64,000 nucleotides of DNA from sequence record LT603033.1. One strand, 5' to 3'. Below are positions 3,500-28,957 of this stretch, piece by piece. The notes below the pieces were generated by a model. The model saw only the letters and a list, made by a program, of their open reading frames with translations, had not been told where the DNA came from and ran no database searches. The stretch's first letter is position 1, and each line of letters opens with the position of its first letter. The position numbers and the translations under genes are program-made.

Positions 3500-3506
3500 C
3501 GTTATA

Positions 3507-6500
3507 TTAAGAACCGATATTAATATTACTTTTAGCTAGTGAGTTAACAATTTGAACATTTTCAACAGATGCAGTACTCAAAAATATTTGGTCTGAACGT
3601 GAAGGGATTTCAAATAGAGAGCCAAATTTTGAATTTGGATTTTGTGCAACTATAACAATGGTACTAATATGTCTACCTAACTGTGAGTGTATGTAAGTAC
3701 ACAAATCAGTATAATAGAAACTTTCACCGAAATCCCAGTTGTCAACATTGAAGTATTCATTAGTTAATGCTATAACATTTTGACGAATTTCATCGTCACT
3801 CATTGTGCTGTTTGGTAATTTCACTACTTTAAAATCAGCTTTGTAATCTTCAGCAGCACTGTTGCCAAATAAAGGTAAGTACTCAGCACTATGCCAAATA
3901 ATACTATCACTAATGACTATTTTTTGTTCAACATCTTTGAACATATCTTTCAATTCAACCGATGTAGGTGGTTTAGGAATACTACCAACAGCATTATTTT
4001 TCAACCAAACGTCAACTTCAGTTTTATATGAATTGGTTAATACATACATATCAATTAAGTTTGTTCTACTAGGATCAATGCGATTGTCGTCAGGTGCATA
4101 GTGTTTCCAATGGAAGTCTATACTAGTACGTGCATTAGTTTTAACAGTGTACTGTGAAGTAACATCTTTGTATCCATAATAATCTAGCTTCTGATTCTCG
4201 TCAGCATTAGTTCCCATGTTATTAATTGCACGATAAAAAGCCAATTCAGGACTAACAGTGCCAGTATCATCGGAATAAGTTAAATTACTAATTAGCTGTC
4301 CTAAACGATCATTGTTGTTACCAACTGTTTGTTCAATAAAATAATATTTACCATCATAGTTAAAACCAACTAAAAATCCAGAACCTTTACTATATAATCC
4401 ACTCAATGTGGTTGAACGAATTGCGTTATTTCTAACAAATTCAGTTCTTTTATATGCATTCGGCTCTGCCAAGGCTTGTTCCATTGTATAAGACCACGAT
4501 GAATCAAGAAGTGTGAAGGTATCATTTGGTAACGACAGTACTGATATAGTGAAATCACTATTTTCCTGAAATACCAAAATACCACCATATTTTAATGCAT
4601 CGGTTCCAGTCCAAGTAGGAACAATTTCTTTAAATTGGTTTGGTTCCAATGGTATACCATTACTATCTACTTTCCTAGATGTAACAATAACACGAGAACC
4701 ATCTAGATAGCCATTCTCTTGTTGAATTGTGTCATAAATTTGAAAATCTATATTACTTGTCAATCCTGAATTACTACTACTAGTAGTGTTAGATGATAAA
4801 ATTTCAATCTTATCACTTTGAACTGTACCAGTACTAATATCAGTAATTTTTTTAGATGATACAAAGTAAAATCTTACTTTTTCTCCACCCACAAAAATAT
4901 ATTCAATACCGTTAGCATCAAATTCCCAAGTTTCTGCTGTATATTTTACATTAATTATAATTAAAACTTCATTACCATTATATACAATAGTATCATCATT
5001 GGTACTTACTTCAATAGGAACCCATGATGTCGTTTCTTTGTCATGTACAATAACAAAATCAGTTTTTTTATCTAGCATAGCAGAAATTGCTTGAACTTCA
5101 ACCGAGTTAAATCTAGTTCTATATGGTAAAATGTACTCTATGGCTTGCATTCCACTTGGAACCGATGTACTCAGTACATAAAATCCATTATCCAATACAC
5201 TAACTACACTAGCCCATATAGTAGTTCCAGAATTAGAAAATTTAATTAGAGTACCAACCTGATATGAACCATAAACTGTACCAGATGAACCCAAAATTCT
5301 ACCATATGTGTTAGTTGTATAATTTGAATTGTATACCGGAGTCCATGCTTGTTGTATTTCAATACCAATTGTATTTGATGGAAACGCTTGGTAACGTTGT
5401 ATTACCGCATTTTCACCAATCAATGGTTGAATATTGTCAATAACAATACTAGCATTTGTTTTTGTAGTTGGTAGCAATAATGATCTATTAAATTGTGTGT
5501 TTTCTTGATATAATGCACCATCATCACTAAAAACATCGGTATTTTGATACTTACCAGTAGGATCATTAATATCAATAAATCTTGATTGTCCACTATAAAT
5601 TCTATTAATAGCTTTAGATTTAAGTACAGTATTGCCTAAACTAAGTGGTGCAATATTATAATCTTCACCATTGACAAAACGGTTTTGTGTATAGTACATT
5701 TGTGGTGCACGTGCTTTAATCTGCTCAATAGTCTCTGCACTTTGTGCACGGTCGGACTCATATTGTAATGAAAAACGTATATCCAATGTACTAGATTCAT
5801 AACTTGACTGTGTTTTTGTACGATATGTATATTTTACGCTTTTGTTTTGAATTTCAGAAGTTTTAATGTTATATGTTTTACCATTACTAACACGATACCA
5901 TACGCGGAACGTCCCACGGGGAACAACACCACTTCTTGAGTCTGGATACTTAATTGTTATTTGATCTTTATCACGAGTAGTAACAGCAAAAATTGTTTTT
6001 AATTGACGATTAACAGTGTTATATGCAATACTTTCCATTGATGGAACTTTTGTCCATTTGGTACGAACAATACCATCTTCATTTATTTCTTGAACCCATA
6101 CATCAGTTTCGTTGATATTATCAACGTTAATATCTTGTATACGGTTCTCTTCACGGATAGCATATTGATAATCTTGATATGTCAATGTACCTTGTACGAA
6201 ATATACAAAAAAACCAGTATTTGGTGAACTAAATCCATTACCATCATTTTGATAAACAATATATTTTTGCTCTTGTGGTTCTGGATGTCGTTCTTCAACA
6301 CCAACAGACGTAATATCAGGATTCACTACTTCAAATGTCATAGATTCACCATTGACAGTTGCAATAAATGGAATACTGGGTGCTGTCATTGGGATGGTGT
6401 TCATTCGATATAGTTGACGAGAGACACCATTAACATCAATACGCTTGACTGGATTACCAAATTGGTTAGTACTGACAAATGAACTGTTCATTACTAGAAT

Positions 6501-6968
6501 GAAGTTTTCATACCAGTTAGCATCCATCGGGTCATTCCAACGAATGATTTTATCTTTTAATGATTCATTAAAACTATTACGAACATCTTGGTTTGTTTTA
6601 ATTTCGGTTAATTTAGCAACTGCACGACCTGGATATGAGCGGCGTGGTGAGTAAGAAATCATTTTAGCTAGTTTTAGTACTGATGCACGACGAGTTGCAG
6701 TATCTAAAAAGTTTTCACGTGTGTTCAAATCCATACGAAATGCCAAGTTCTGCCCTAGCATAGAAATCGTATCTAAAATAAAAATAAACTGGTCGTTTTC
6801 GATCCAGTCGTTGAATGAGTCTGGGTAAGTTGCACGTAGATAATCAATCATACTCTGACGGATAGTATCGAAGTCATAAGCTGTAAGATTGATTTTATAA
6901 AAACTTTCATATACTTGAGTCCAATCCTCACCAGCGTATAAATTTGATTGCCTTTTTTGTTGTGACAT
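3507..6968 (-). CDS. gp6: Baseplate wedge subunit (T4 gp6-like)
   Basis: N-terminal DFDTIRQSMIDYL...FNDW...NFLDTATRRASVLKLAKMISYSP and ETIEQIKARAPQMYYTQNRFVNGEDY are gp6/baseplate-J family signatures; 1153 aa; next to gp25. Confidence 0.85.
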   Translation of the reverse strand: MSQQKRQSNLYAGEDWTQVYESFYKINLTAYDFDTIRQSMIDYLRATYPDSFNDWIENDQFIFILDTISMLGQNLAFRMDLNTRENFLDTATRRASVLKLAKMISYSPRRSYPGRAVAKLTEIKTNQDVRNSFNESLKDKIIRWNDPMDANWYENFILVMNSSFVSTNQFGNPVKRIDVNGVSRQLYRMNTIPMTAPSIPFIATVNGESMTFEVVNPDITSVGVEERHPEPQEQKYIVYQNDGNGFSSPNTGFFVYFVQGTLTYQDYQYAIREENRIQDINVDNINETDVWVQEINEDGIVRTKWTKVPSMESIAYNTVNRQLKTIFAVTTRDKDQITIKYPDSRSGVVPRGTFRVWYRVSNGKTYNIKTSEIQNKSVKYTYRTKTQSSYESSTLDIRFSLQYESDRAQSAETIEQIKARAPQMYYTQNRFVNGEDYNIAPLSLGNTVLKSKAINRIYSGQSRFIDINDPTGKYQNTDVFSDDGALYQENTQFNRSLLLPTTKTNASIVIDNIQPLIGENAVIQRYQAFPSNTIGIEIQQAWTPVYNSNYTTNTYGRILGSSGTVYGSYQVGTLIKFSNSGTTIWASVVSVLDNGFYVLSTSVPSGMQAIEYILPYRTRFNSVEVQAISAMLDKKTDFVIVHDKETTSWVPIEVSTNDDTIVYNGNEVLIIINVKYTAETWEFDANGIEYIFVGGEKVRFYFVSSKKITDISTGTVQSDKIEILSSNTTSSSNSGLTSNIDFQIYDTIQQENGYLDGSRVIVTSRKVDSNGIPLEPNQFKEIVPTWTGTDALKYGGILVFQENSDFTISVLSLPNDTFTLLDSSWSYTMEQALAEPNAYKRTEFVRNNAIRSTTLSGLYSKGSGFLVGFNYDGKYYFIEQTVGNNNDRLGQLISNLTYSDDTGTVSPELAFYRAINNMGTNADENQKLDYYGYKDVTSQYTVKTNARTSIDFHWKHYAPDDNRIDPSRTNLIDMYVLTNSYKTEVDVWLKNNAVGSIPKPPTSVELKDMFKDVEQKIVISDSIIWHSAEYLPLFGNSAAEDYKADFKVVKLPNSTMSDDEIRQNVIALTNEYFNVDNWDFGESFYYTDLCTYIHSQLGRHISTIVIVAQNPNSKFGSLFEIPSRSDQIFLSTASVENVQIVNSLAKSNINIGS

Positions 6969-7035
6969 AATTTATTCCTTTAAATCAGTAAAGTACTAGT
7001 TCAGTACTGGGAATTATATATAGAAATATTTATTC

Positions 7036-7065
7036 AAAAAGAAAAGCACTCCGAAGAGTGCTTTT
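7036..7065 (-). terminator. Intrinsic terminator after gp25
   Basis: On minus: AAAAGCACTC-TTCG-GAGTGCTTTT followed by a T-rich run. Confidence 0.75.
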
Positions 7066-7069
7066 GTAA

Positions 7070-7465
7070 TTATAAAGACGATACTGAATATGTTGCCATT
7101 CTGTTATTACTTCTTGCATCGAATACAATAGTAAGTTCTTCTAATGTATCCAATACTACGTACTGTAATACAATATTCATTTGGTATCCATATTCTATTC
7201 TTGAAATTTGCAATTTCTTAAGATTTAAGCGTGGATCTAAGCTAATTATTCTACGGGCATCTGCTTCCAAAAGGTTGATAGTATTATAACCTTCCAATTC
7301 AAACAGCAAATCCCATGCAATAAAACCATAGTCAGCATCAAATGCTCTTTCGCCTTTTTTTGTATTGAAATGATTCATTAAATCTTGGCGAACCAATTCA
7401 CTATCATACAATGTTTCAGTTCTACCCACTACTGGGGTAGAAAAACCTTTAAAAACAACTGCCAT
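7070..7465 (-). CDS. gp25: Baseplate wedge subunit gp25 (GPW/gp25 family)
   Basis: LMNHFNTKKGERAFDADYG...LLFE and IISLDPRL motifs; 131 aa; between spike and gp6. Confidence 0.85.
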   Translation of the reverse strand: MAVVFKGFSTPVVGRTETLYDSELVRQDLMNHFNTKKGERAFDADYGFIAWDLLFELEGYNTINLLEADARRIISLDPRLNLKKLQISRIEYGYQMNIVLQYVVLDTLEELTIVFDARSNNRMATYSVSSL

Positions 7466-7480
7466 TGACTATTTCCTTTA

Positions 7481-7969
7481 TTATACGGATTCAACAATAC
7501 GTGCCATCTTTTCCGCTCTTGAAGTGGTTTGTTTATACCATGTACTATCACGCAATTCCTTACCAGCAGTTTTATAATCAGCCTTACCTAATGCGGTCAT
7601 TGCTTTTTTAAATTTTAAAACTTTGGTTTTGCCCATCTGGAATACCATCAACCATAATACACGTTGAACCTGTATAGGTGCGGTCATACCAAATTGTTCA
7701 TAAATTGATTTTGCATCATTGTACGCAGTTTGAGCATCTTTAAGAAGAAGTTGGTCAGCTTGTGCTTCTGTTAAACCATTCTTGAAATTTTCACCAGGTA
7801 AAACTAGGTGACCATAGCCAATTGTATCAAGACCTAAGCTGTCTTTATATACCCAAAACTTATCATTTTTAAAATAACCAAGTTTTTTCTGATAAGCAAT
7901 AGTTCCTTCAAATTCTTTAATTTCCTTAAAAAATTGCTCATCTGTATTTTTAATTTCCCATTTACTCAT
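7481..7969 (-). CDS. Phage lysozyme (GH24, T4 lysozyme-like)
   Basis: EG...YKDSLGLDTIGYGHL with the E/D/T triad; MVFQMG and STWYKQTTSRAEKM motifs. Confidence 0.9.
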   Translation of the reverse strand: MSKWEIKNTDEQFFKEIKEFEGTIAYQKKLGYFKNDKFWVYKDSLGLDTIGYGHLVLPGENFKNGLTEAQADQLLLKDAQTAYNDAKSIYEQFGMTAPIQVQRVLWLMVFQMGKTKVLKFKKAMTALGKADYKTAGKELRDSTWYKQTTSRAEKMARIVESV

Positions 7970-7985
7970 AAAGATATCCTCGTTT

Positions 7986-7993
7986 TATTTATA
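7986..7993 (-). promoter_or_regulatory. T4-type late promoter (TATAAATA) for the standalone lysozyme
   Basis: Exact consensus just upstream of the start at 7969. Confidence 0.7.
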
Positions 7994-8005
7994 GTACTAA
8001 AATAT

Positions 8006-10669
8006 TTATTGACATGCCTCTAAACGACGAGCCATTAACTCAGCACGGCGAGTAGTTTGGCGATACCAAGCTGAATTACGTATTTGAGCAGCAGCTTGTT
8101 TATAATTACCTTTAGCTAATTCAGACAACATAGTTTTAAATTTAAGTACCCCACCTTTACCCATCTGGAATACCATTTGGCATAGTACTTGTTGAGCCAA
8201 ATAAGGTGTTTTCATGTTATATGAAGCATAAATTGATTTAGCATCATATATAGCTTTACTACTATCACGAACTAACATATCGTTGGCTTGCTGTTCAGTT
8301 ATTCCATCTGAAAAGTTTTCACCACTAATAATCAAGTGACCATAACCAATAGTTGGATACCCACGACTATCCAAATAACGCCAGAATTTACCATTACGAT
8401 AATATCCTTTTGCTTGTTGGTATTGTAATGTACCTTCATATTCTTTTAATTCAGAAATAAATTGTGCATCACCTGGAACAACTTTCCAATCGATTGCAGT
8501 TTTATCAACATTTCCAATATTATAGGTAGGTTGCTCCACCGGAGTTGTTGAAGCTCCACTTCTCTGTGTTCTTCTCCTACGAGGCACATGACGAGAACCA
8601 CGTTGAGAATATCCAGTACCTATCGTTTTGATTTTTGTTGTAACTACCAATTCATCACTATCAACTGAAGGTTGTACAACTGCTTTTGGAGCAGATTGAT
8701 TAGTTGCTTGACCACCAATTAATGTTTTATTCGCCGCATCAGACCCTGTTCCTGTTTGTGAAGCATAAAATAATCCTGGGTCAACAGAACCACTGAATCC
8801 AAGAACATTTGCTGATGTAACACGAATTTCAAACTGTATGACACCATTTGCTTTTCCAACAACTTGACCTTTTTGAACAACATCTTTGTTTAATAAATCA
8901 GATTGAATATTATAAAAAATAGATTTATATCCAGACTTATGTTGTATTAAAAGAGCACCATTAGTAATTACTACCACACCACCATCTGGTGCAACTACAT
9001 CACCTTTACATTGTATTTCCCAACCTGAACGGTCTGCCTTTCCTCCACTTTGTGTTGGAACACCTTTCCCCCAGTAACCATATTGTCGAATAGTACCGCT
9101 ACATGGCATTAACATATGTAAACCTTCATATGTAATACTATATCCAGTCATCCCAGGATCAGATGTCATCAAATCTTGTGATTGAACTTGTTCAGTTTCT
9201 GATGTATAGTTAACAAACTGAACAGCTTCAGTGTCTTGTGCTACGGGTAATTCTGGTGATACATCATTTGCTGGTTGTGGTTGTACTGGTGATTCACTAG
9301 AACCACTTCCACCACCTTGTCTTGGTGGTTCAACATAACTACCATGATTTTCAGCGTTAACCCATGCAGCGATATCATGAATGTGTTCATTAAGACCAGC
9401 AGATGGTGTTCTAAAGTTTGGTGCAGTAAATTCAGCAGTACCGCTATTACCACCACTATTAACTGTTAATGTTTGACCACCACCACTAATAATTGCTGAT
9501 GATGATCCAATTAGGTTTGCAGATGTTGCGGCAGAAATAGAAGCATTTGAACCAGCCGTAATATCAGTACTGCTACCACTTTGCATACGTAATGATGCAG
9601 CCGTAACTAAACGAAGGTCTGCCCCAGAATTAACAACAACTTGTCCACCAACTTTTGCATCAAGAGCACCAATTAGATCTAATTTAGTATTTGCACCAAC
9701 TCGTGCATTGAAATCTTGTCCGGTTTCAATATTATATGAACGTCCAGCAGTAATATTAATATCTTGACCAGCACGAATATTAATATTCTTATCACAGTGC
9801 ATGTCAATATCACCTTCACCAGTGAATTTTATACGTGCAGTGCCATCACGGTTAATTAAAAGAACATCACCAGTAGCTTCTGATAAAAGAAGTTGTGCAC
9901 CACTACGTGTTTTTATTACGACACCTTCATTTTTACGAGAACCAACACGTGTATCGTTTACTGGGTTATTAAATTGTGTATCTTGATATCCATCTGGGTC
10001 TTGATCCCACGTTGGTGCTGTTAATTCCTCTTCAGTATATCCATCATCAATAATAAAACTATTACCACGTGGCGAAGACATACCATATACAGTACTGGTG
10101 GTTTGTCGAGTACTACTACGATTCGCCAACCCAGCTTCTTCGTCATATAAAAGGTTTTGCTTTTTAAGACCTGCGATAATTGGAACGTTAGCATATTTGT
10201 CTTGCATATCGGTAGTGATAGTGTTACGATCATAGTCAGTAACAGGAAGTGGCATATCAGTTCCACCATAATTACTTACTTCAGTTGCCATACCTGGAAC
10301 CATAGTATTCATACGCTGGTCATATACACAACCAATCCAATATGCTTGGAATGTACGGGCTTGTGCAAAAATTACAACAACTGTACACCCTACGTCTGGT
10401 GGTACTGCCCAAAAACCGTATCCTTTTGGATATTGACCATATGCATCAGCACTTGGAATACCTGGTGTTTTACCAGCAAAAGGAGACATGTAAGATGCTT
10501 CTATCCATGATTCTTTTGAGTTTTTATCACTTTGAGAACCTTGTATCCAAACTTTCAGTTTTCCTGATTTAGTTGGATCTCTGTTATCCATAACAGTTGC
10601 TAACTGCGGATAAGATGGGTCAAAACGACCCAACTGCTGTTGTGCATACTTTTTACTTGTATCTGCCAT
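8006..10669 (-). CDS. gp5: Baseplate central spike (gp5-like): OB-fold, beta-helix, HxH apex, degenerate M23-like domain, C-terminal lysozyme
   Basis: DNRDPTKSGKLKVWI and YGFWAVPPDVGCTVVVIF (gp5 OB-fold); repetitive NINIRAGQDINITAG beta-helix; NEHIHD; C-terminal EG...YLDSRGYPTIGYGHL lysozyme. Confidence 0.85.
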   Translation of the reverse strand: MADTSKKYAQQQLGRFDPSYPQLATVMDNRDPTKSGKLKVWIQGSQSDKNSKESWIEASYMSPFAGKTPGIPSADAYGQYPKGYGFWAVPPDVGCTVVVIFAQARTFQAYWIGCVYDQRMNTMVPGMATEVSNYGGTDMPLPVTDYDRNTITTDMQDKYANVPIIAGLKKQNLLYDEEAGLANRSSTRQTTSTVYGMSSPRGNSFIIDDGYTEEELTAPTWDQDPDGYQDTQFNNPVNDTRVGSRKNEGVVIKTRSGAQLLLSEATGDVLLINRDGTARIKFTGEGDIDMHCDKNINIRAGQDINITAGRSYNIETGQDFNARVGANTKLDLIGALDAKVGGQVVVNSGADLRLVTAASLRMQSGSSTDITAGSNASISAATSANLIGSSSAIISGGGQTLTVNSGGNSGTAEFTAPNFRTPSAGLNEHIHDIAAWVNAENHGSYVEPPRQGGGSGSSESPVQPQPANDVSPELPVAQDTEAVQFVNYTSETEQVQSQDLMTSDPGMTGYSITYEGLHMLMPCSGTIRQYGYWGKGVPTQSGGKADRSGWEIQCKGDVVAPDGGVVVITNGALLIQHKSGYKSIFYNIQSDLLNKDVVQKGQVVGKANGVIQFEIRVTSANVLGFSGSVDPGLFYASQTGTGSDAANKTLIGGQATNQSAPKAVVQPSVDSDELVVTTKIKTIGTGYSQRGSRHVPRRRRTQRSGASTTPVEQPTYNIGNVDKTAIDWKVVPGDAQFISELKEYEGTLQYQQAKGYYRNGKFWRYLDSRGYPTIGYGHLIISGENFSDGITEQQANDMLVRDSSKAIYDAKSIYASYNMKTPYLAQQVLCQMVFQMGKGGVLKFKTMLSELAKGNYKQAAAQIRNSAWYRQTTRRAELMARRLEACQ

Positions 10670-10682
10670 AATATTTTATTCC

Positions 10683-12932
10683 TTAATCAACTATACTATC
10701 GTGACGTTTGAGTGCACGAATTACAATTGCAGCTTGAATTTGTTGTGTAAAAGAACCACCTGCACCAAAATCATGAACAATTTTATTAACACGATAAATT
10801 GTTTGGTTAAATGTGGTTGGTGTATTAATATCCAAAACACCAGTGTTATCATTTATTGATATTACTGGTTGTAATTTTAGTAATAGATACGCTTCAGATG
10901 TTATATAATTTGCTACATGATAATCATCTGGGTTAATTTCCATATCTTCACCATTAATTACTTGTTCTAGATATTGTAAGTAAGAGTAATCACTCCACCC
11001 TAACCAGTACGGGTCGCCTACTACACGCATATCGAGTTTACACAAAAAAGGTCTATTGTAATAGTTGTCACGTATTTTACGTCTATCCATTTCATATGTG
11101 CTGCTGTTATCGTTTAACGAAGCGGATAAAGTTGTTTCATTGTTAGTTGCTTCGGTTGGCATTGTGAACACTTCACCATAACGGTGACCAACACCATCAG
11201 TGCCACCATCGTTTTCTTCATAAGTGGTTACATAATCTTCAATATATTGAGGTAAAACATTGACTTGATAGTTATTATAACGGTCTTGTTCTTCTGCGTT
11301 ACCAACCTGCATTTGATTTTTTGCTAAAGTTTCAACTTCAGTTAACAATTGTTGTTGGGCTTGTGTTAACATCCCTCCTAAATCACGAGTTACACGTAAA
11401 TCACTTGTTTTTGCCCATGCGTCTGGTATACTATTGTATTGTACACCTTGAATATTGAGTTCTTGGGATGTATGTGTACCTGCATGGTTCGCTACATCTT
11501 GTATCGGACCAGGGTTACGTGTAGTGGCTACGAAAAATTGCTGATCAAATTTCAAATCCAAATCAAGTATCTCACTATTAAGTCCACTAAATTGATAATT
11601 ATAAGTTTTCATGTTTATTTTTGGTTTTTGATCATTAGGATCTACGTATTTTTCTGCGTTCTCAAAAAAGTACTCAAATGTGAAATTTTCAGGTTGTAAA
11701 TCCGATTCATGAACAATATCACCTATTTTAAATCTAACAATATAAAAAATTACTTTATAAACAGAAGTATTACGATAATTATCAAAACCAACGTATTGTT
11801 TAACTGGTATAATGTTTACAAATTGACGCACACTAGTACTATCATCGGCTTGTACAGTACATGTATCAATAACGTCATCAATAATTCGAGATATAGGAGT
11901 ACTTGGGTTCCATGAAAAGTTTTTAGAACCTTGTGCACCACTTTTAGTTGTTCCGGCCTCTGCCATTTGTTTAGAATCATAGTTTATAAACAAATCTTGC
12001 AAATCTGGTGCTACTTTAAATTCGAAAAATTTACCTTCGGATAATTCACCAAATTTATATCTAAGATAACCATATTGTTGGTCAGCCATCTGATTTAATT
12101 TATCTTCTAAATCAAAACAGAAGTCACCAAAGTTTTCAGCAGTACAATTGAATGGTTCTTTTAAGGTCCATTCAATGTTATCAACTAAAGCTGCTCTATT
12201 ATGAACTAAGTTCATAGTATACATCATAGTACTACCACTTTGTGAAGCACTTGCAGTAACACTATTAATTTTAACTGACCAGCGTCTTGTTGTTTCTGGG
12301 ATAATTTCAGGTATTCCATTTTTATTAAAGCCAATAAACTTTAATTCCAAGATCAATGGCAAGTCCATAAATTTATGATATCTAAGTTTGTTACTTAACG
12401 AAATTAATTCATCATATAGACTCATACTATTATTTTCAGACATATTAAGTACTGCTGTATTAAAACAATAGTTTGTTGTCATTCCTGGTGTTGAAGGTCC
12501 AGCTTGTGTCATTTGTACACTAGTGATATTATATTTGCCAGTAACACCACTTTCTGATATCACATGTCGTTGCACTTCTGCATCTGGGTAAAGCCAAAAG
12601 TTTTTAAAATCATCTTTATCTAAGGCAAATAAACAAAAGTGCCAAGTTGGGTTATCATATTTCAATAATTTATTGTCATACGGTATTACAAACTGACTTA
12701 AATCGAGATCTTCATAAACTTGATCAACACTAGCACTTTGTTTTGGTAATGATACTACATTACTTACATTTGCTTTGTAATTATTTTTTGTAATAGTTTT
12801 TACATCATTTTGTAATGTATTTGCTGTAGCTTTCAAACTATCAAGTGCATTAGATGTGGTGGTTTTAGCCTTACCAGTAATACTTGTAATATCATTTTGA
12901 AAATTATCAACTGTACTTCGTAAATCTGCCAT
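10683..12932 (-). CDS. Probable baseplate hub protein (gp27-like)
   Basis: 749 aa, between the LysM/gp53-like gene and the spike, as in contractile systems; C-terminal DMRVVGDPYW...YRVNKIVHDFGAGGSFTQQI resembles hub proteins. Mostly synteny. Confidence 0.45.
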   Translation of the reverse strand: MADLRSTVDNFQNDITSITGKAKTTTSNALDSLKATANTLQNDVKTITKNNYKANVSNVVSLPKQSASVDQVYEDLDLSQFVIPYDNKLLKYDNPTWHFCLFALDKDDFKNFWLYPDAEVQRHVISESGVTGKYNITSVQMTQAGPSTPGMTTNYCFNTAVLNMSENNSMSLYDELISLSNKLRYHKFMDLPLILELKFIGFNKNGIPEIIPETTRRWSVKINSVTASASQSGSTMMYTMNLVHNRAALVDNIEWTLKEPFNCTAENFGDFCFDLEDKLNQMADQQYGYLRYKFGELSEGKFFEFKVAPDLQDLFINYDSKQMAEAGTTKSGAQGSKNFSWNPSTPISRIIDDVIDTCTVQADDSTSVRQFVNIIPVKQYVGFDNYRNTSVYKVIFYIVRFKIGDIVHESDLQPENFTFEYFFENAEKYVDPNDQKPKINMKTYNYQFSGLNSEILDLDLKFDQQFFVATTRNPGPIQDVANHAGTHTSQELNIQGVQYNSIPDAWAKTSDLRVTRDLGGMLTQAQQQLLTEVETLAKNQMQVGNAEEQDRYNNYQVNVLPQYIEDYVTTYEENDGGTDGVGHRYGEVFTMPTEATNNETTLSASLNDNSSTYEMDRRKIRDNYYNRPFLCKLDMRVVGDPYWLGWSDYSYLQYLEQVINGEDMEINPDDYHVANYITSEAYLLLKLQPVISINDNTGVLDINTPTTFNQTIYRVNKIVHDFGAGGSFTQQIQAAIVIRALKRHDSIVD

Positions 12933-12943
12933 ACGTTACTCCA

Positions 12944-13258
12944 TTAGCCTATGTTTCGAGTACCATTAAGATAATTCTGTACTCTTTGATTTGCTGGTAT
13001 TCTAATTGTTACTCCACTTTTAAAATTATATATAGGATCTTCTCCTAGTATGTCTGGATTTAACAATGCGAAAATATAATATAAGCGTTCATTACCATAC
13101 ATTTCGTATGCTAAACGCCAAGGTTGATATTCATATTTCAATGGGATCTCATAAAAATCATCAGTATCAGCCGGAACAATATCACGTGGTAAAGTATACC
13201 CAAGATACCATGTTTGTTTCACCTTAGCGTAAGGTGAGTATTGACTATAGTTGGACAT
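12944..13258 (-). CDS. Baseplate wedge gp53-like / LysM-type protein
   Basis: QPWRLAYEMYGNERLYYIFALLNPDI...FKSGVTIRIP matches the gp53/tail-X LysM-like pattern. Confidence 0.6.
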   Translation of the reverse strand: MSNYSQYSPYAKVKQTWYLGYTLPRDIVPADTDDFYEIPLKYEYQPWRLAYEMYGNERLYYIFALLNPDILGEDPIYNFKSGVTIRIPANQRVQNYLNGTRNIG

Positions 13259-13989
13259 TAAATGAATCCTCCTTTACGTAATAGTTCACCACGTTTGAAT
13301 GCATTGAGGTTGAACGTTTTAGTCATATAATCCGATGTTGGTTGTTCTTCAAGTTGTAACATAACTGAGATTTTTTGTGGAACCCAAACTTCATCTTGTG
13401 GGTTCATATATCCAGTACTTCTAAGTTGTTCGAAGAATTTTCTACTATCCATGTCGGATAAATTAAAAGTACTATCGCTACTATTCAACGGAACTTGAAT
13501 ATAAGAAACATCATTTGGGTAAGTAAAATTATAAGATTTTAAAATAACAGGAATATCATTATATGTATAACGACCATATCCACTTAGAAGTAAGATTGGT
13601 GGTGGTGCACCTGCAATTGCGAGTTCGGGGTTATTAGCCGATGCAGCTTGTCTACCAAAATCCATCAACGAAACAGAACGTATAAAATGAACACATGCCA
13701 ACGCATACATAGCTTCTGCTGCTGTATTCGCATAAAATTCACCCTGAATCGTGAAAACTGTATTAGTAGTGTTCTTATAGTTGTTATAGTTACTGTTAGT
13801 ATGTATAGGGGACTGTGTTTCATACTGAATTGACCTTTGTTCAGTAATTGTTGGTGTTACAGTCCAAACCAACCCATTAGTTGGACGCAGAAACGAAAGT
13901 AGAGTTGGTTCGGAGCTATCTCCAAAATCACCATATACATAGTTAGCACCTGCGGCTTTAGGTCGTAATCGAATTCTACGATCAATCAT
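13258..13989 (-). CDS. Tail tube-fold baseplate protein (gp48/gp54-like tube initiator)
   Basis: Start moved to ATG 13989 (GGAG upstream; track start 14079 overlaps promoters). APPPILLLSGYGRYTYNDIPVILKSYNFTY is typical of contractile-system tube-initiator proteins. Confidence 0.55.
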   Translation of the reverse strand: MIDRRIRLRPKAAGANYVYGDFGDSSEPTLLSFLRPTNGLVWTVTPTITEQRSIQYETQSPIHTNSNYNNYKNTTNTVFTIQGEFYANTAAEAMYALACVHFIRSVSLMDFGRQAASANNPELAIAGAPPPILLLSGYGRYTYNDIPVILKSYNFTYPNDVSYIQVPLNSSDSTFNLSDMDSRKFFEQLRSTGYMNPQDEVWVPQKISVMLQLEEQPTSDYMTKTFNLNAFKRGELLRKGGFI

Positions 13990-14024
13990 CTTTTTGATTC
14001 TCCATAATAAGGGAACATTTGATG

Positions 14025-14034: not shown

Positions 14035-14063
14035 TGGGACAAACTGCTTTTTGGTGCTATAAT
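14035..14063 (+). promoter_or_regulatory. YGRGACA-N16-TATAAT class promoter (gp55-gp47-gp46 operon)
   Basis: TGGGACA-AACTGCTTTTTGGTGC-TATAAT; one of 10 copies with identical spacing. Confidence 0.7.
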
Positions 14064-18142: not shown

Positions 18143-18168
18143 AAAGGGAGCCTTAGCTCCCTTTTTTT
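18143..18168 (+). terminator. Intrinsic (probably bidirectional) terminator between gp46 and gp49
   Basis: AAAGGGAGC-CTTA-GCTCCCTTT followed by a T run. Confidence 0.8.
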
Positions 18169-18644
18169 ATATCAACCATATTTAATTTACCGTCCTTAAT
18201 CAGCTTTCTAGCTTGCTTTACACGAGCAGTAGTGTTACTACCAGGGACAACTCCTAACCCTTCCAGAATCGCGTTTTGCTGTGTTGCTGGAAGCCTTTTA
18301 AACTTATTAACATCCACAGTTAGTGCAGTGTGATGTATAACTTGTTCATCGTCAGGAATGCTGTTATTACGCTCTAAGTAATCAGCAAGATTTCTGAGTA
18401 CCTCATATAATGGTTTATCAGTTAAGTGCTTCATATATCGATTGAAGCTGTTTTGTACCTTTCCTTCCCAAGCATTGACTTCATTTTGAAGAACTTGTCT
18501 ACAATGTTGGTTACCATAGTGGTAGTGATCCAGTACTGGTTTAGTTATTGGTTCTTTAATTATAGGATCTATTCCATTTTGTTTCTTTAGTAATTCGTTT
18601 CGATAGTTTGCAGCATCCTTACTATCTTTTAATCTTTTTTTCAT
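18153..18644 (-). CDS. gp49: Recombination/packaging endonuclease VII (gp49-like), lacking the Zn cysteines
   Basis: VLDHYH and NAWEG correspond to T4 EndoVII D40/H41/H43 and N62/E65. Confidence 0.75.
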   Translation of the reverse strand: MKKRLKDSKDAANYRNELLKKQNGIDPIIKEPITKPVLDHYHYGNQHCRQVLQNEVNAWEGKVQNSFNRYMKHLTDKPLYEVLRNLADYLERNNSIPDDEQVIHHTALTVDVNKFKRLPATQQNAILEGLGVVPGSNTTARVKQARKLIKDGKLNMVDIKKGS

Positions 18645-18674
18645 AATTCCTCACCAAACTATTTGTTATCAAAA

Positions 18675-18682
18675 TATTTATA
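18675..18682 (-). promoter_or_regulatory. T4-type late promoter (TATAAATA) for gp49
   Basis: Exact consensus upstream of GAGG...ATG 18644. Confidence 0.65.
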
Positions 18683-18735
18683 GATTAGTTATTTGCAATA
18701 TTTTAAGTACTTAATGAATATTTTTATAAAAATAG

Positions 18736-18764
18736 TGAGACAACTTTAAAGTTTGTGCTATAAT
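18736..18764 (+). promoter_or_regulatory. YGRGACA-N16-TATAAT class promoter driving the non-coding locus
   Basis: TGAGACA-ACTTTAAAGTTTGTGC-TATAAT with no protein gene downstream on the plus strand. Confidence 0.7.
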
Positions 18765-18770
18765 GTTTGT

Positions 18771-19254
18771 TGTAGTAATGACAATCCTGTTGAATGCAGA
18801 AATGCATATAAATTAGAACCTGATCCTATCGAAAATGTAGATGGCAGATGAGCAGTTCAACAGTGCGATGAGCAAAAGAAACCCGTTAGATGTGGGCATA
18901 GTTTGAACCCCTCACGGCAATGCGGCTCAATAAAGAACTCCGATAAGCATACAGAGAGTTCCTCGATAGACATATAAGGATCGCACCTTACCAGATTTGC
19001 TAAGGGAGTTTATTAAGTGATTTTAATAAACAGCCTGAAGTTTGATTGTATAGACTTTCAGGTGAGTGTCAGGATGATTAAGACTGACGACCGTTGCACA
19101 TGACTGCGATAGAGAGAAACAGAGCAACCCGCTTTCGTTCTTAATATATTTTTAAGAAATTCGCAATACAATAAATGCTGAAACTATCAGCGTCAAGAAA
19201 TAGAGACTTCATTGTCTCTTTTTTATTGTCTTCATTCCCCTGCGGGGGGATGAA
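18771..19254 (+). ncRNA. Candidate large structured non-coding RNA, family unknown
   Basis: No ORF of 60 aa or more in 18645-19481; own promoter and terminator-like hairpin; about ten stems found by eye (see findings); visibly more GC-rich than its flanks. Confidence 0.5.
19202..19224 (+). terminator. Terminator-like hairpin at the 3' end of the candidate RNA
   Basis: AGAGAC-TTCATT-GTCTCT followed by TTTTT. Confidence 0.6.
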
Positions 19255-19442
19255 AATGTCCTCAACAAATCCCGTCAAGTATTAAATCTTTTAAAGTTCT
19301 TTATAATTAATTTAATTAAATGAATATGAGTTACGTAGTAACGAATATTCTTCAGCTAACGAATGAAATGAGTTAGATGAATCCAATAATATTAAAATTA
19401 ATCCTTTCATAATTCAATTCAAATAATTCTGTAGTTTAAACC

Positions 19443-19470
19443 AAAAAAAAAACCAGCAACAATGTGCTGG
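19443..19470 (-). terminator. Intrinsic terminator after the gp51-like gene
   Basis: On minus: CCAGCA-loop-TGCTGG followed by T10. Confidence 0.75.
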
Positions 19471-19481
19471 CTATATGAAAA

Positions 19482-19691
19482 TTAGTGCTTCTCGTTTTGT
19501 TTTTTAATTTTTTTATTAAAAGACTTAACTAATAAGTCTCTATCTATTAATGGCATATTAAGGAGTGTTCCATAGTCAATGTTATCCATATATACAGAAC
19601 ATTCCATTAGTGCATTTTTGATTTCTGACTTATTCAGTTCTATCTCCTTCAGTACTTCTTGTATTTCTTCAGGAGATGACTGGAGAAGCAT
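19482..19691 (-). CDS. Baseplate hub assembly chaperone (gp51-like)
   Basis: 69 aa with IDYGTLLNMPLIDRDLLV; translationally coupled downstream of gp26. Confidence 0.5.
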   Translation of the reverse strand: MLLQSSPEEIQEVLKEIELNKSEIKNALMECSVYMDNIDYGTLLNMPLIDRDLLVKSFNKKIKKQNEKH

Positions 19692-20527
19692 TACTCGAAA
19701 AAATGACTAGGATCATATTTTAGTCCATCAATTTCCCATTGATGATTACATCCATCACATTCTACTTCAATACTATGTGATACTCCAATTTCAAGTACTT
19801 CATCCATTTTTTCACGAATTAGTTTAAGTACTCCCTTCGATTGTTGTCCAAGCCATTCATTAATAAATTCTTTTTCAACTACTTCATCACCATCTGGTGT
19901 TATAATTTTTGCAATAACTCCACCGATCATGTCGAAGTTAAGTTGAGCCATGTTTTCAAATACTTCAGAAAATATTTTTACTTTTTCATCTTTATCAATA
20001 TCAGCAGTTTCAAGAAACTTAGTCTTCTGCTGCTCACTGAACATGCGTTCAGCAAACGATGAATATTCTTTCCATGTCAGTGGTCTAAATTCTAAACGGA
20101 GTCCATTATCTAAATCAATTGATGGGATTTCTTCAAATGCTTGTGCAGTTTCAAGAAGATATGATAGATTACGCTCAAATCGACCTTCTTTTTCACATTC
20201 AGGACATACAACGTTAATATCATATGTTTCTTCTTTGGAAGCAACTTTAATAGCAATAAGAAGCATTTCAACGTCATTTACATACAACTCATCAGCGTCA
20301 ATTACATTAGGAACACAGTTTTCAATAACACGGGATACTGCATCTCCGTTTAGTAACATATCGGGGGTATTAAGTGTCATTTCATCACGTGCACTACGTG
20401 CACAAACTCCACATTTGACACCTTTTGGACCTAGAACTCCTTCTTTGTAAGGAATAACGCCGTTTGTAACTAACTTAGTACTGATCTCTTCAATTTTAGT
20501 GTACTTAGCAAGTGGATTCATAGCCAT
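19691..20527 (-). CDS. gp26: Baseplate hub subunit (gp26-like)
   Basis: NPLAKY; ARDEMTLNTPDMLLNGDAVSRVIENCVP; DVEMLLIAIKVAS; CPEC and CDGC zinc motifs. Confidence 0.8.
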   Translation of the reverse strand: MAMNPLAKYTKIEEISTKLVTNGVIPYKEGVLGPKGVKCGVCARSARDEMTLNTPDMLLNGDAVSRVIENCVPNVIDADELYVNDVEMLLIAIKVASKEETYDINVVCPECEKEGRFERNLSYLLETAQAFEEIPSIDLDNGLRLEFRPLTWKEYSSFAERMFSEQQKTKFLETADIDKDEKVKIFSEVFENMAQLNFDMIGGVIAKIITPDGDEVVEKEFINEWLGQQSKGVLKLIREKMDEVLEIGVSHSIEVECDGCNHQWEIDGLKYDPSHFFE

Positions 20528-25884: not shown

Positions 25885-26508
25885 ATGAGTAGTATGATTC
25901 GTGAATGGTCTTCATTCAATGATTCTAAAGTTGTTTTGGAACATCGTGATAATGGATTTGGTGGGCGTGACTGCTATCTTCGTGGTATTGCTATTCAAGC
26001 CGACCAACGAAATTTGAACGAGAGAATTTACCCTTTATCTGAAATTACAAGGGCAGTAAATAACATGAACCAGCGTTTAGCTAAAGGTGAAAGCATTCTT
26101 GTTGAATGTGACCATCCAGAAACACTAACTATTAACCTAGACCGTGTAGCAGCAATGATTACTAAGGTTTGGATGGAAGGTGCTAATGGTATGGCAGAAA
26201 TCAAACTACTTGATACTGCACATGGTCAGAATATCCGTAAAATGCTAGAGGCTGGTGTAAAACTTGGTGTAAGTTCTCGCGGTTCCGGTAACGTTGATTA
26301 TAATGGAATAGTTTCTGATTTTGAAATTATCACTATTGATATTGTTGCTCAACCTAGTGCTCCAGAAGCATACCCAACAGCGGTATTTGAATCTCTGATG
26401 AGTAAGTACGGATCACCTTGTAATAGTTCTAAAAAAATCACTGAATCTAAAAAAGTAAATAATTTAGATTCTGAAATATACGATTTTTTCAAGAAATTAA
26501 AAGGTTAA
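25885..26508 (+). CDS. gp21: Prohead protease
   Basis: GIAIQADQRNLNERIYP; ECDHPE; LGVSSRGSG; FEIITIDIVAQPSAPEAYP. Confidence 0.9.
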   Translation: MSSMIREWSSFNDSKVVLEHRDNGFGGRDCYLRGIAIQADQRNLNERIYPLSEITRAVNNMNQRLAKGESILVECDHPETLTINLDRVAAMITKVWMEGANGMAEIKLLDTAHGQNIRKMLEAGVKLGVSSRGSGNVDYNGIVSDFEIITIDIVAQPSAPEAYPTAVFESLMSKYGSPCNSSKKITESKKVNNLDSEIYDFFKKLKG

Positions 26509-26574
26509 CATTTTAAAAATATAAATATCTGTATGTTGAAGTACAGATATTTCAGTACTTAAAGGAGAGAACGA

Positions 26575-27690
26575 ATGTCTAAATTAGAAAAGCTTCTAAA
26601 AGAATCATCTCTTTCTGATGAGGCAAAACAGCTAATTCAGGAAGCATGGAATGAAGAAAAGAATACACTAGCCGCAGAGATGCGTGAAGAAATGAAAGGC
26701 CGTTATCAGCAAGATTTGGCTGAACTAACCGAAGGTTTGAACACGATGGTTACTCAAGTCATTGCTGAAGAAATGGGTGCTGTATATGAAGAGAAAAAAC
26801 GTCTCGTTGAAGATCGTGTAACTCTACGTAAAACACTAAGCAATTTCTCTGCGTTTTCAAACTCTGTTTTGGCTGAAGAAGTTAAACAAATGCGTAAAGA
26901 ACGTAAGCATCTTCATGAATGCATGGGTAAATTCGTTAATTTTTCTAACGGTATCCTAGCAGAAGAGCTAAAAGAATTCCACACTGAAAAACGCCAACTA
27001 GTAGAAACTCGCGTTAAACTACTTGCTGAAGGTTCACGTCAAATTGCTGAAGCTCGTAATAACTTCATCAAACGTACATCTGAAAGTGCTGCTAAATATA
27101 TTGCAGAAACCACTCAGAAGAATCTATATGCGTTGAAACAAGATCTAGTGGAAGCAAAACAAAATATGTTTGGTCGTAAAATCTTTGAAGCATTTGCTCA
27201 AGAGTTTAATGTCAAACAATTTAATGAAAACTCATTGCTACGTTCCCTAACTGAATCAATTAAATCTAAAGAAGATGAAATTGCTCAAGTTAAGCAAGAA
27301 CTACATGAAACTGCTAATGCCGTTAAAGCTGCTAAAACCAAACTACGTATTATGGAAGATGCACAAGCACGTAATGCGATTATGTCTGAACTAGTAAAAC
27401 CACTAACTGCACAGCAAAAACAAATTATGGAATCCCTTCTAGCTACTTCACCTACTGAAAAGCTTAAAGAAGATTTCAGCAAGTACCATAAGTCAGTACT
27501 TAACGGTACTAAAGTAAATGAATCTGCTACCACTCGTCAAGCAGTTCAGTCTTCCGCTAAGAAAACTCTTGCAGAAGGTAAAGTAATCACTGGCAACCGT
27601 CAGGCTATTGTTGAAAGCGAAGAAATGACCGCTGACGATATGGCATTCCTAAAAGAACTAGATGTTCTTTCAGGTATCAATAAAAAATAA
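26575..27690 (+). CDS. gp22: Prohead scaffold protein
   Basis: 371-aa coiled coil between protease and MCP; late promoter TATAAATA at 26520-26527. Confidence 0.8.
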   Translation: MSKLEKLLKESSLSDEAKQLIQEAWNEEKNTLAAEMREEMKGRYQQDLAELTEGLNTMVTQVIAEEMGAVYEEKKRLVEDRVTLRKTLSNFSAFSNSVLAEEVKQMRKERKHLHECMGKFVNFSNGILAEELKEFHTEKRQLVETRVKLLAEGSRQIAEARNNFIKRTSESAAKYIAETTQKNLYALKQDLVEAKQNMFGRKIFEAFAQEFNVKQFNENSLLRSLTESIKSKEDEIAQVKQELHETANAVKAAKTKLRIMEDAQARNAIMSELVKPLTAQQKQIMESLLATSPTEKLKEDFSKYHKSVLNGTKVNESATTRQAVQSSAKKTLAEGKVITGNRQAIVESEEMTADDMAFLKELDVLSGINKK

Positions 27691-27728
27691 ACATTTTAAA
27701 GCATTTTAATAATCAAATTTTTCAGTTC

Positions 27729-27736
27729 TATAAATA
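27729..27736 (+). promoter_or_regulatory. T4-type late promoter (TATAAATA) for the major capsid gene
   Basis: Exact consensus, flanked by the inverted repeat TTTTTCAGT/ACTGAAAAA. Confidence 0.75.
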
Positions 27737-27781
27737 ATATCATACTGAAAAACGAATATAACATCTTTAAGGAGATATATA

Positions 27782-28957
27782 ATGTCACAACTACTAAATG
27801 AATCCAAATGGGTAGCAGTAAAAGAGAAACTAGTTGAAGGTCTACAGGGTACTCGTAAGTCTGTAATGGAAACTGTTCTTGATAACCATCGTAAAGTTAT
27901 GCTAACTGAATCCGCAACTTCTGGTGCAACTACCGCTGGTAACATCGCTACTCTAAACAAAGTGATTCTACCAATTATGCGTCGTGTAATGCCAACCGTT
28001 ATTGCTAACGAAATCATCGGTGTTCAACCTATGACTGGTCCAGTTGGTCAGATCCACACCCTACGTGTACAATATGCTGATAACGCACCTGGTGTAATCG
28101 CTGGTGAAGAAATGCTTTCTCCATACAAAATCGCTAAATCTTACTCTGGTGATCTAAATGCGGATAATAGCAACCCACAAGCTGCTCCTACTAGCCAACT
28201 AGAAGGTACTATGGGTCGTCGCGTTAACATCCGTATTCTACGTGAAACTGTTGAAGCGAAATCTCGTCGTCTATCTGCACGTTGGACTGTTGAATCTGCA
28301 CAAGATGCACAATCCCAACATGGTGTTGACGTTGAAGCAGAACTAATGGCTGCAATCGCTCAAGAAGTTACCGTAGAAATCGACCAAGAGCTACTAAGCC
28401 GTCTACGTGCACTACCTGGTGCTGCTGCTGTAACTTATGACCAATCTAAAGTTACTGGTGTTGCAACCTTCGTTGGTGATGAGCACGCTGCTCTAGCAAC
28501 TCTAATTAACCGTCAAGCAAACGAAGTTGCTCGTCGTACTAAGCGTGGTGCTGCAAACTGGGCTGTTGTTTCCCCAACTGCACTAACCATTCTACAATCT
28601 GCTACTACTTCTAGCTTTGCACGTACCACTGAAGGTACTTTCGAAGCCCCAACTAACGTTAAGTTTGTAGGTACTCTAAACAGCACTATGCGTATTTTTG
28701 TTGATACTTATGCAAGTGATGCAGAAGATATTCTAATTGGTTATAAAGGTAATGCAGAAACTGATGCTGGTGTGTTCTATTGCCCATACATCCCACTAAT
28801 GGCTTCCGGTACTGTAATGGACCCTAACACTGGGGAATTGGTCACAACTTTCCTTACCAGGTATGGTTATGTACAATTGACTGATAGTACTTCTTCTCTT
28901 GGTAACGCTGCTGACTACTACAGCAAAATCGCTATCAAAAACGTTACTTTCATGTAA
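27782..28957 (+). CDS. gp23: Major capsid protein
   Basis: LPIMRRVMPTVIANEIIGVQPMTGPVGQI; VEAKSRRLSARWT; GYKG...FYCPYIPL; TRYG; strong codon bias. Confidence 0.95.
   Translation: MSQLLNESKWVAVKEKLVEGLQGTRKSVMETVLDNHRKVMLTESATSGATTAGNIATLNKVILPIMRRVMPTVIANEIIGVQPMTGPVGQIHTLRVQYADNAPGVIAGEEMLSPYKIAKSYSGDLNADNSNPQAAPTSQLEGTMGRRVNIRILRETVEAKSRRLSARWTVESAQDAQSQHGVDVEAELMAAIAQEVTVEIDQELLSRLRALPGAAAVTYDQSKVTGVATFVGDEHAALATLINRQANEVARRTKRGAANWAVVSPTALTILQSATTSSFARTTEGTFEAPTNVKFVGTLNSTMRIFVDTYASDAEDILIGYKGNAETDAGVFYCPYIPLMASGTVMDPNTGELVTTFLTRYGYVQLTDSTSSLGNAADYYSKIAIKNVTFM

Follow-up and report, generated by a model that had tools for sequence, protein, structure and literature searches.

The stretch of DNA analysed here, referred to as the window, comprises 64,000 nucleotides of record LT603033.1, the genome of Escherichia phage vB_Eco_slurp01, a Rak2-like jumbo phage. 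The only interval of at least 300 nt in the window without an ORF of 60 aa or more lies at 18645-19481, between convergent neighbouring genes. The gap holds a promoter and a structured RNA of about 500 nt, perhaps about 680 nt with a 3' extension, with a G+C content of 0.41-0.43 inside the element compared with 0.25-0.29 in the flanks. The promoter (18736..18764, + strand) consists of a -35-like box, TGAGACA (18736-42), a 13-nt spacer and an extended -10, TGCTATAAT (18756-64), scoring 10 of 12, with a predicted start near 18771. The class TGRRAY-N13-15-TRNTATAAT occurs 18 times on the + strand of the phage genome against 0.6 expected, and four of these drive four copies of the RNA. A strict pattern finds the promoter upstream of 56 of 69 homologues and, of the copies it missed, the five inspected by eye (three island copies, RaK2 and XaC1) carry a looser form. 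The promoter belongs to the TGAAAC(G) class, matching the divergent RpoD-like promoter TGAAACG of phages CBB and GAP32, a class found upstream of DNA-synthesis genes in the CBB genome (PMC5259590), so co-expression with replication genes is plausible.

The 5' domain extends from 18787 to 19005 on the + strand. P1, CTGTTGAA/TTCAACAG, pairs 18787-94 with 18856-63, its 3' strand lying in the loop of a small stem, 18852-54/18864-66, and is followed by P2 (18795-99/18803-07), P3 (18820-30/18840-47), P4 (18869-73/18925-29), P5 (18883-86/18914-17), P6 (18935-40/18956-61) and P7 (18975-78/18987-90). These helices were derived from RNAalifold, pair counts on a MAFFT alignment and mutual information. 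A tertiary pairing of 18920-22 with 18971-73 covaries and replaces a 3-bp helix, 18969-71/19274-76, proposed by RNAalifold. Both the small stem and the tertiary triplet are 100% paired, each with 2 of 3 pairs showing compensatory change. An invariant CUAAGGGA is found at 19000-07, followed by a variable slot (19008..19031, +) which in this copy is a local hairpin, GTTTATTAA/TTAATAAAC, and in most other copies holds the module GUACAAUAUAGAUCCGUCC.

The 3' core (19033..19172, +) is the most conserved domain. Hairpin H (19034-41/19055-62) is present in 67 of 69 copies, and its loop (19045-51) pairs with 19166-72 to form pseudoknot P8. P9 (19067-71/19085-89), an invariant GACCGU, pseudoknot PK2 (19093-97 with 19124-28), P11 (19105-09/19161-65), P12 (19112-16/19132-36) with the invariant loop AAACAGAGCAACCCG, and P13 (19138-42/19154-58) complete this domain, PK2 replacing a helix, 19093-95/19102-04, called by RNAalifold. 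Downstream, a direct-repeat unit, GCTGAAACTATCAGCGTCAAG (19177..19197, +), changes in parallel with a second unit, TCCTCAACAAATCCCGTCAAG (19259..19279, +), positions 19187 and 19270 being T/T in 38 copies and C/C in 31, with no exception. Between them lie an optional intrinsic-terminator-like hairpin (19202..19224, +), AGAGAC/GTCTCT followed by T6, and a conserved G+C hairpin (19231..19254, +), UUCAUUCCCC-UGCG-GGGGGGAUGAA, with a nearly invariant G-run. The terminator-like hairpin is present in about half of the copies and is absent from two of the copies in this genome, designated A and B; its stem sequence differs between copies while pairing is kept. The inner five pairs of the G+C hairpin are 100% paired, with G-C to G-U changes.

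The second repeat unit ends the segment conserved in all copies, although in many copies conservation extends about 150 nt further. This probable 3' extension (19280..19450, +) is AT-rich and contains the hairpin GAATAT..GTTAC-GTA-GTAAC..ATATTC (19323-19350). Most relatives have a hairpin here with the loop GAACGNAGUGA, a motif found 49 times in 66 downstream regions against 3.8 expected. Covarying stems are seen by eye in the downstream alignment; the MAFFT alignment was too gappy for RNAalifold. The extension is less certain than the other parts. A bidirectional terminator hairpin at 19451..19472, conserved in orthologous loci and shared with the convergent 69-aa gene, would end any read-through RNA.

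Folding energy alone provides weak evidence for an RNA, with z of -2.8 on both strands. In contrast, covariation is very strong; about 100 non-redundant homologues were recovered. The 74 nested pairs are 96% paired, against 37-46% in slid controls, and 406 cells have compensatory changes, against 46-59 in slid controls, values reached by 0 of 500 shuffles. The same holds for the 3' core on 74 distinct sequences, in which 96.5% of cells pair against 37-46% when slid. Importantly, P8 is 98.8% paired and PK2 is 100% paired, although neither was part of the covariance model, R1. In total, about 15 helices are supported, including two or three pseudoknots that were tested independently of the model. 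G-U pairs outnumber A-C pairs 170 to 21, which assigns the fold to the + strand. A coding reading of the gap is rejected, as variability by codon phase is 0.244, 0.279 and 0.256, and indel lengths, 282, 671 and 276 by residue modulo 3, are mostly not multiples of three.

Nine of the 12 stems proposed in a sequence-only reading of the locus are supported and three are not. Supported across homologues are P1, P2 (TGCA..TGCA), P6 (GAACTC/GAGTTC), hairpin H (CCTGAA/TTCAGG), P9 (GTCAG/CTGAC), P13 (TTCTTAA/TTAAGAA), the terminator hairpin and the G+C hairpin. Among those not supported, CCTTA pairs with the upstream TAAGG (18975-78) and not with 19001-05, the latter pairing being 81% paired with no compensatory change, GCTGA/TCAGC is 32% paired across the family and the GACAAT/ATTGTC closing stem is 57% paired; GTTTATTAA/TTAATAAAC lies in the variable slot and is specific to this copy. 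The main proposal of that reading, an undescribed large structured RNA with its own promoter, is supported by covariation, strand-specific G-U pairs and the absence of any coding signal, of an Rfam hit and of a report in the papers searched. It requires correction in that the RNA is not a single locus, is longer than 480 nt, conservation continuing past 19254 to at least 19279, contains pseudoknots and is not confined to jumbo phages.

The element does not correspond to a known RNA family in the searches performed. No Rfam 15 family, including GOLLD, ROOL, OLE, raiA and HEARO, reaches its gathering score in the 64-kb window, and the best E-values within 18600-19500, 0.6-0.8, are to unrelated small RNAs through their terminators. 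ARAGORN finds no tRNA or tmRNA in the window. Group I and group II introns and RNase P RNA likewise give no Rfam hit, and the element has its own promoter and lies between genes. None of the papers searched describes the RNA, and the record of UE-S1 only marks an automatic 'repeat_region'.

Comparison of the window with itself found only the promoter repeated because the other RNA copies lie outside it. R1 finds exactly four copies in this phage genome, diverged paralogues dispersed at 29, 135, 188 and 267 kb, all on one strand. Four to five copies are present in most relatives and two in RaK2. A search of plasmids found nothing, and nine chance pattern matches in IMG/VR, seven in genomes and four in metagenomes were discarded by nhmmer. 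In divergent L139-type variants the 3' core is conserved while the 5' half can be replaced; PHROG annotation of the L139-type contigs was uninformative. Unexpectedly, the family also sits, as a single copy, in small AT-rich integrative islands of Serratia, Enterobacter, Silvania and E. coli, in the order int, RNA, cI/cro, then defence cargo such as DarTG. The island copies keep the phage-specific TGAAAC promoter box and nest within the tree of phage paralogues at two or more places. By tblastn, island ORFs have no homologues in the phage apart from one DUF4326 protein. The conserved island neighbour orf286 has no family match and its N-terminus looks like three membrane helices, so that it appears to be a membrane protein and not a replication initiator.

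Combined, these results indicate that the locus is a gene, read rightwards from its own phage-class promoter, for a large structured non-coding RNA of two domains, although no transcript data exist for any member. Large, highly structured RNAs with no known function are rare, and past examples (RNase P, group I and II introns, tmRNA, OLE, GOLLD and ROOL) each opened new biochemistry. This family lives in culturable E. coli phages (121Q, PBECO4, slurp01 and G17) that grow on K-12, and its repeated capture by defence-carrying islands and multiple copies per genome suggest that it matters to phage propagation and to conflict between phages and mobile elements. Our best, tentative explanation (probability about 0.4) is that the folded RNA itself is the working part, acting in trans and in large amounts, although no partner, ligand, multimer or activity has been shown. 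The invariant unpaired stretches, GACCGU, AAACAGAGCAACCCG, CUAAGGGA and GAUAGACAUAUAAGG, probably form a binding surface or self-assembly interface, and some of the pseudoknots may really be contacts between molecules. In this reading the RNA is made together with DNA-synthesis genes and serves propagation of the element that carries it, and islands have acquired copies from the phages more than once, keeping the phage-type promoter either to exploit or to interfere with whatever the phage RNA does. The number of copies and the lack of a shared protein partner are consistent with this view. However, multiple dispersed copies in one orientation, a promoter class shared with replication genes, a G-run, an AT-rich tail and two direct repeats that co-vary by identity fit a DNA-linked role at least as well, and the position of the RNA in the conserved island backbone next to int suggests a role in the life cycle rather than as accessory cargo.

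The main rival, an origin-priming transcript as also raised in the sequence-only reading, is neither shown nor excluded, and we consider it less likely. Here the folded RNA would help its own 3' part to stay hybridised to the template and prime leading-strand synthesis, the phage having four to five such origins and the islands one, so that the infecting phage's replisome would copy them. Identity covariation of the repeats is expected if RNA repeat 1 pairs with the template strand of repeat 2. Dispersal of the copies on one strand, the promoter class (in T4, middle promoters appear to serve as origin promoters), the G-run hairpin, the AT-rich (25% G+C) downstream stretch, a phage-encoded RNase HI, the repeated acquisition by islands and the absence of a recognisable replication gene from the island backbone also favour this view. 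Conversely, pseudoknots and long invariant loops go well beyond anything known for primer transcripts, and about half of the copies have a terminator-like hairpin before the G-run. Cumulative GC skew shows no turn at the four loci, although skew here mostly follows gene orientation and was uninformative, and a separate 2.2-kb gene-free stretch rich in tandem repeats at 76-78 kb looks more like a classical origin.

The size, pseudoknotted core and invariant unpaired nucleotides resemble large ribozymes, and the core could catalyse a reaction, for example processing or joining of RNA, that both phage and island need. This is improbable, as no ribozyme family in Rfam matches even at E of 10, a catalyst would not need four or five gene copies, no substrate is evident and the element does not lie inside a gene, as introns do. 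Least likely is a cis-acting leader, riboswitch-like or a processive antitermination element. Copies A and B have no terminator and run into + strand genes, but the window copy and all the island copies examined (Serratia fonticola, Silvania, Buttiauxella and Enterobacter chinensis) face a convergent gene, and the downstream genes are unrelated between copies.

The islands carry DarT/DarG with a UvrD-like helicase, and DUF4326/DUF488, and keep the phage-type -35 box. It is conceivable, but doubtful, that the island copy is a decoy, switched on by the infecting phage's transcription factor and titrating whatever binds the phage's own RNAs, or alternatively that the phage RNAs are sponges for a host defence factor. 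This view concerns biological role, overlaps with the best explanation and names no mechanism, and the RNA is in the constant backbone of the island, not in the variable cargo. A further possibility, also unlikely, is that the RNA is the handle by which these islands, with the layout int, RNA, cI/cro, membrane protein and cargo, parasitise Rak2-like jumbo phages, the copy being activated on infection and making the phage replicate, package or otherwise serve the island, or poisoning the phage's own RNA-dependent step. If so, the islands would be the first satellites or hyperparasites described for jumbo phages, and the first to work through a shared ornate RNA rather than a protein.

In the Pseudomonas jumbo phage PA5oct, of a related phage group, RNA-seq showed abundant ORF-less transcripts of 236 and 451 nt, ncRNA001 and ncRNA002, at 2-5% of phage reads (PMC7318152). 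No homology to these is detectable by nhmmer at E of 10 or below or by R1 at E of 1 or below. The T4 oriF/oriG origin transcripts and ColE1 RNA II share with the locus a promoter followed by a transcript of a few hundred nucleotides, a G-rich element and an AT-rich downstream region, with several loci per phage genome, as in T4, and a promoter class tied to replication genes. Those transcripts have no conserved pseudoknotted core, T4 origins are not homologous to each other and nothing here shows an R-loop. The phi29 pRNA is a phage RNA with its own promoter that works as a multimer through co-varying loop-loop pairs, but it is 174 nt, single-copy and tied to the phi29 type of packaging motor, with no similarity to the RNA here, and T4-like packaging is not known to use RNA. 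With more than 400 nt, many covariation-supported helices, pseudoknots, no coding signature, and carriage by phages and prophage-like elements without a conserved neighbouring protein gene, the RNA fits the informal class of large ornate phage-borne ncRNAs in these respects. ROOL (about 580 nt) is encoded by phages and prophages, highly structured with pseudoknots and very abundant where measured, and its covariation-predicted tertiary pairs turned out to be kissing loops between molecules of an octameric cage (bioRxiv 10.1101/2024.12.08.627333); its fold is different. [quoted passage not shown] GOLLD is typically near tRNA genes, as are many ROOL loci, whereas the RNA here is not; it is present in two to five copies, occurs in enterobacterial jumbo phages and has a phage-specific promoter. 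As a concept, ornate phage RNAs have precedents, while as a sequence and structure family this one is new.

The RNA locus lies in Escherichia phage vB_Eco_slurp01 (LT603033.1, genus Asteriusvirus), a 348-kb Rak2-like jumbo phage of the 121Q/PBECO4 group to which the window is 100% identical, window position being equal to record position minus 248000. It is situated between two genes, both on the minus strand, an endonuclease VII gene at 18153-18644 and a 69-aa ORF followed by a baseplate-hub gene at 19482-20527. The intervening stretch, 18645-19481, is the only interval of at least 300 nt in the window without an ORF of 60 aa or more, and bidirectional terminator hairpins at 18143-18164 and 19451-19472 bracket the endonuclease VII gene and the RNA locus. 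A promoter consisting of TGAGACA, a 13-nt spacer and TGCTATAAT was confirmed, G+C content is 0.41-0.43 inside the element compared with 0.25-0.29 in the flanks, and a hairpin followed by a T-run at 19202-19224 is called as a terminator. No tRNA or tmRNA was detected, and a search of Rfam 15 returned nothing at gathering scores and nothing better than an E-value of about 0.6 locally. Folding energy provided only modest support, with z = -2.8 on either strand. The case therefore rests on comparative data.

BLASTN detected the core in 72 phage records, all Rak2-like jumbo phages of Escherichia, Salmonella, Klebsiella, Erwinia, Yersinia, Serratia, Cronobacter, Pectobacterium and Xanthomonas, with identity falling to about 67% and with four to five matching places per genome. 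The remainder of the slurp01 genome was examined and four paralogous copies are present, at 29.5, 135.4, 188.2 and 266.8 kb, the last being the window copy. All four are on the + strand, each lies in its own gene-free gap, and they are 70-85% identical to each other. A covariance model of the core, R1, confirmed exactly four copies. GAP32, Serratia phage BF and one metagenomic genome have five copies, while RaK2 has two. Two degenerate patterns derived from invariant positions recovered 57 stretches from IMG/VR, 82 real loci from metagenomes and eight real loci from bacterial genome assemblies, which reduce to 69 full-length representatives at 96% identity. The UE-S1 GenBank record marks 158 nt of this RNA (ON568341.1 311350-311507; positions 416-573 of the extracted stretch L066) as an unexplained 'repeat_region', and several other records call three to five short hypothetical proteins across it, which are probably spurious.

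Secondary structure was investigated using a MAFFT alignment of 32 copies that was not fitted to any structure. RNAalifold predicts 74 pairs, of which 47 show compensatory double changes. In this alignment 96.0% of cells pair, compared with 37-46% when the 3' partners are slid by one to three columns, 406 cells have double changes, compared with 46-59 in the slid controls, and the covariation score is 0.50, compared with 0.11 or less in the slid controls. None of the observed measures was reached in any of 500 shuffles. Mutual information on the 69 representatives adds pairs that a nested predictor cannot find. Hairpin H, 19034-41/19055-62, is found in 67 of 69 copies with many different stem sequences. 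In pseudoknot P8, the loop of H at 19045-51 pairs with 19166-72 and covaries at 7 of 7 pairs, while in pseudoknot PK2, GUUGC at 19093-97 pairs with GCAAC at 19124-28 inside the invariant P12 loop, being 100% paired with 3 of 5 pairs covarying. The 3' strand of helix P1 lies in the loop of a small stem, 18852-54/18864-66, which is 100% paired, as is a tertiary triplet between 18920-22 and 18971-73. The two pseudoknots were tested independently on 74 distinct sequences aligned by a covariance model that did not contain P8 or PK2, and the two helices are 98.8% and 100% paired, respectively.

G-U pairs outnumber A-C pairs 170 to 21, so the fold belongs to the + strand. Substitutions show no codon periodicity and indel lengths are mostly not multiples of three, indicating that the element is not coding. 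Of the 12 stems proposed in the sequence-only reading, nine hold up. The three that fail are CCTTA with the downstream TAAGG, GCTGA/TCAGC at the family level, and the GACAAT/ATTGTC pairing proposed to close the 5' and 3' ends. A portable module, GUACAAUAUAGAUCCGUCC(AAAAUU), sits at either of two slots in different copies, between CUAAGGGAG and hairpin H or inside the loop of helix P13, which suggests a tertiary-contact or protein-binding unit. It is absent from the window copy, whereas both are present in slurp01 copy C (38273-38467 of stretch L014).

Conservation extends beyond 19254, the end assigned in the sequence-only reading. A first repeat unit (19177-97) is followed by an optional terminator-like hairpin, present in the window copy and in copy C and absent in copies A and B of slurp01, and then by a nearly invariant G+C hairpin (19231-54) and a second repeat unit (19259-79). 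Some 60-100 nt further on, about 40 of 66 copies carry a hairpin with the loop GAACGNAGUGA, the motif occurring 49 times compared with 3.8 expected, and the window copy has a palindromic variant of this hairpin at 19323-50. The RNA may therefore be about 455 nt when terminated at 19224 and about 680 nt when read through to the bidirectional terminator at 19451-72. At the 5' end, the B-type paralogues, slurp01 copy B (about 35340-35400 of stretch L013) and its relatives L018, L024, L036 and L043-L045, have a hairpin with a T-run between the -10 box and the first helix of the RNA, which is either a 5' attenuator or the terminator of the upstream gene overlapping the promoter.

The promoter class TGRRAY-N13-15-TRNTATAAT occurs 18 times on the + strand and once on the - strand of the slurp01 genome, compared with 0.6 expected, and four of the + strand sites drive the RNA copies. 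Five of the 18 fall in the window, at 18736-18764, 14035-14063, 45747-45775, 55777-55805 and 62166-62194, and one copy sits just upstream of phage tRNA genes at record position 13774. The class matches the 'divergent RpoD-like' promoter, with -35 box TGAAACG, which was found mostly upstream of DNA-synthesis genes in the CBB genome and is also present in GAP32 (PMC5259590).

Copies were also found outside jumbo phages. Real copies occur in chromosomal contigs of enterobacteria, namely Serratia fonticola (a complete chromosome), Serratia sp., Silvania hatchlandensis, Enterobacter chinensis, an Enterobacteriaceae isolate, Buttiauxella and Enterobacteriaceae MAGs, and 2 of 5426 complete E. coli genomes. 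In each case the RNA lies 1-2 kb inside the end of an AT-rich island (30-38% G+C), next to host DNA of 50-60% G+C. A common backbone is seen, comprising in order an integrase of tyrosine or large serine type, the RNA, a convergent CI-like S24 repressor, a Cro-like regulator, a 286-aa protein that is predicted to be membrane-bound, a 138-aa protein, variable cargo, a resolvase and a DUF2188 protein. The cargo differs between islands. In Silvania (2496-14000 of stretch L191) it consists of DarT, a DarG-like hydrolase and a UvrD-like helicase, while in E. coli LR-29-1 (NZ_AP027515.1; 15900-26650 of stretch L190) the island is about 10.7 kb, sits beside ffs and carries DUF4326, DUF488 and dual-OB proteins. 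The S. fonticola island (61-4770 of stretch L100) instead has a serine recombinase and two ParB-like genes. No structural or replication genes were recognised in these small islands, each of which carries one copy of the RNA, and they may be satellites or defence islands linked to jumbo phages. Island proteins have no homologues in the phage apart from DUF4326. The island RNAs keep the phage-type TGAAAC box and, in a tree of the RNAs, nest among the phage paralogues at two or more places, so transfer happened more than once. A further, divergent branch keeps the 3' core, with R1 scores of 86-133 bits, but has an unrelated 5' half. It is represented by contig L139 at 1097-1700 (-) and also by L125, L131, L134, L164, L166, L175, L176 and L188, phage-like metagenomic contigs of 42-49% G+C whose large ORFs have no PHROG match.

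Interestingly, the two direct-repeat units of about 21 nt at 19177-19197 and 19259-19279, which flank the terminator and the G+C hairpins, co-vary by identity rather than by complementarity. Positions 19187 and 19270 are T/T in 38 copies and C/C in 31, with no exception, and no Watson-Crick partner column was found. This is what one would expect if RNA repeat 1 pairs with the template strand of repeat 2, and it favours the main rival interpretation, that the RNA is an origin-priming transcript. The dispersed copies on one strand, the replication-gene promoter class, the G-run and AT-rich tail, and an island backbone without recognisable replication genes are also in its favour. Conversely, this interpretation is opposed by the pseudoknotted, invariant core and by the internal terminators. 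Cumulative GC skew shows no turn at the four loci but is uninformative, as skew in this genome mostly follows gene orientation. In addition, a separate 2.2-kb gene-free stretch at slurp01 record positions 76123-78315 (26123-28315 of stretch L012), outside the window, looks more like a classical origin. It holds several tandem-repeat arrays (60 nt x 3.3, 53 nt x 2.6, and 16/24/48-nt units), has no Rfam hit and could be an iteron-type origin or a packaging region. An origin-priming role is neither shown nor excluded, and the ribozyme, cis-leader and decoy readings are less likely.

Combined, these comparative data show a strand-specific, elaborately folded RNA that is kept in several copies and is inferred to be independently transcribed. 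The observation made from sequence alone is confirmed and its main interpretation, an undescribed large structured RNA with its own promoter, is supported. The locus is a member of a well-populated family of large structured RNAs, shared by Rak2-like jumbo phages and by small integrative islands of enterobacteria, that is not in any Rfam family and is not reported in the genome papers or RNA-discovery surveys that could be searched, the large IMG/VR survey of structured RNAs having only considered motifs of 29-151 nt. It also has no detectable homology, by nhmmer or by R1, to the RNA-seq-defined ncRNAs of PA5oct. We infer that the folded RNA is the working part and that it probably acts in trans and in quantity, like GOLLD and ROOL, a reading to which we assign a probability of only about 0.4. 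The parallels with these RNAs are a phage or prophage habitat, the absence of a known partner protein, for GOLLD a conserved 3' region with a variable 5' region, and covariation-predicted 'tertiary' pairs, which in GOLLD and ROOL proved to be contacts between molecules.
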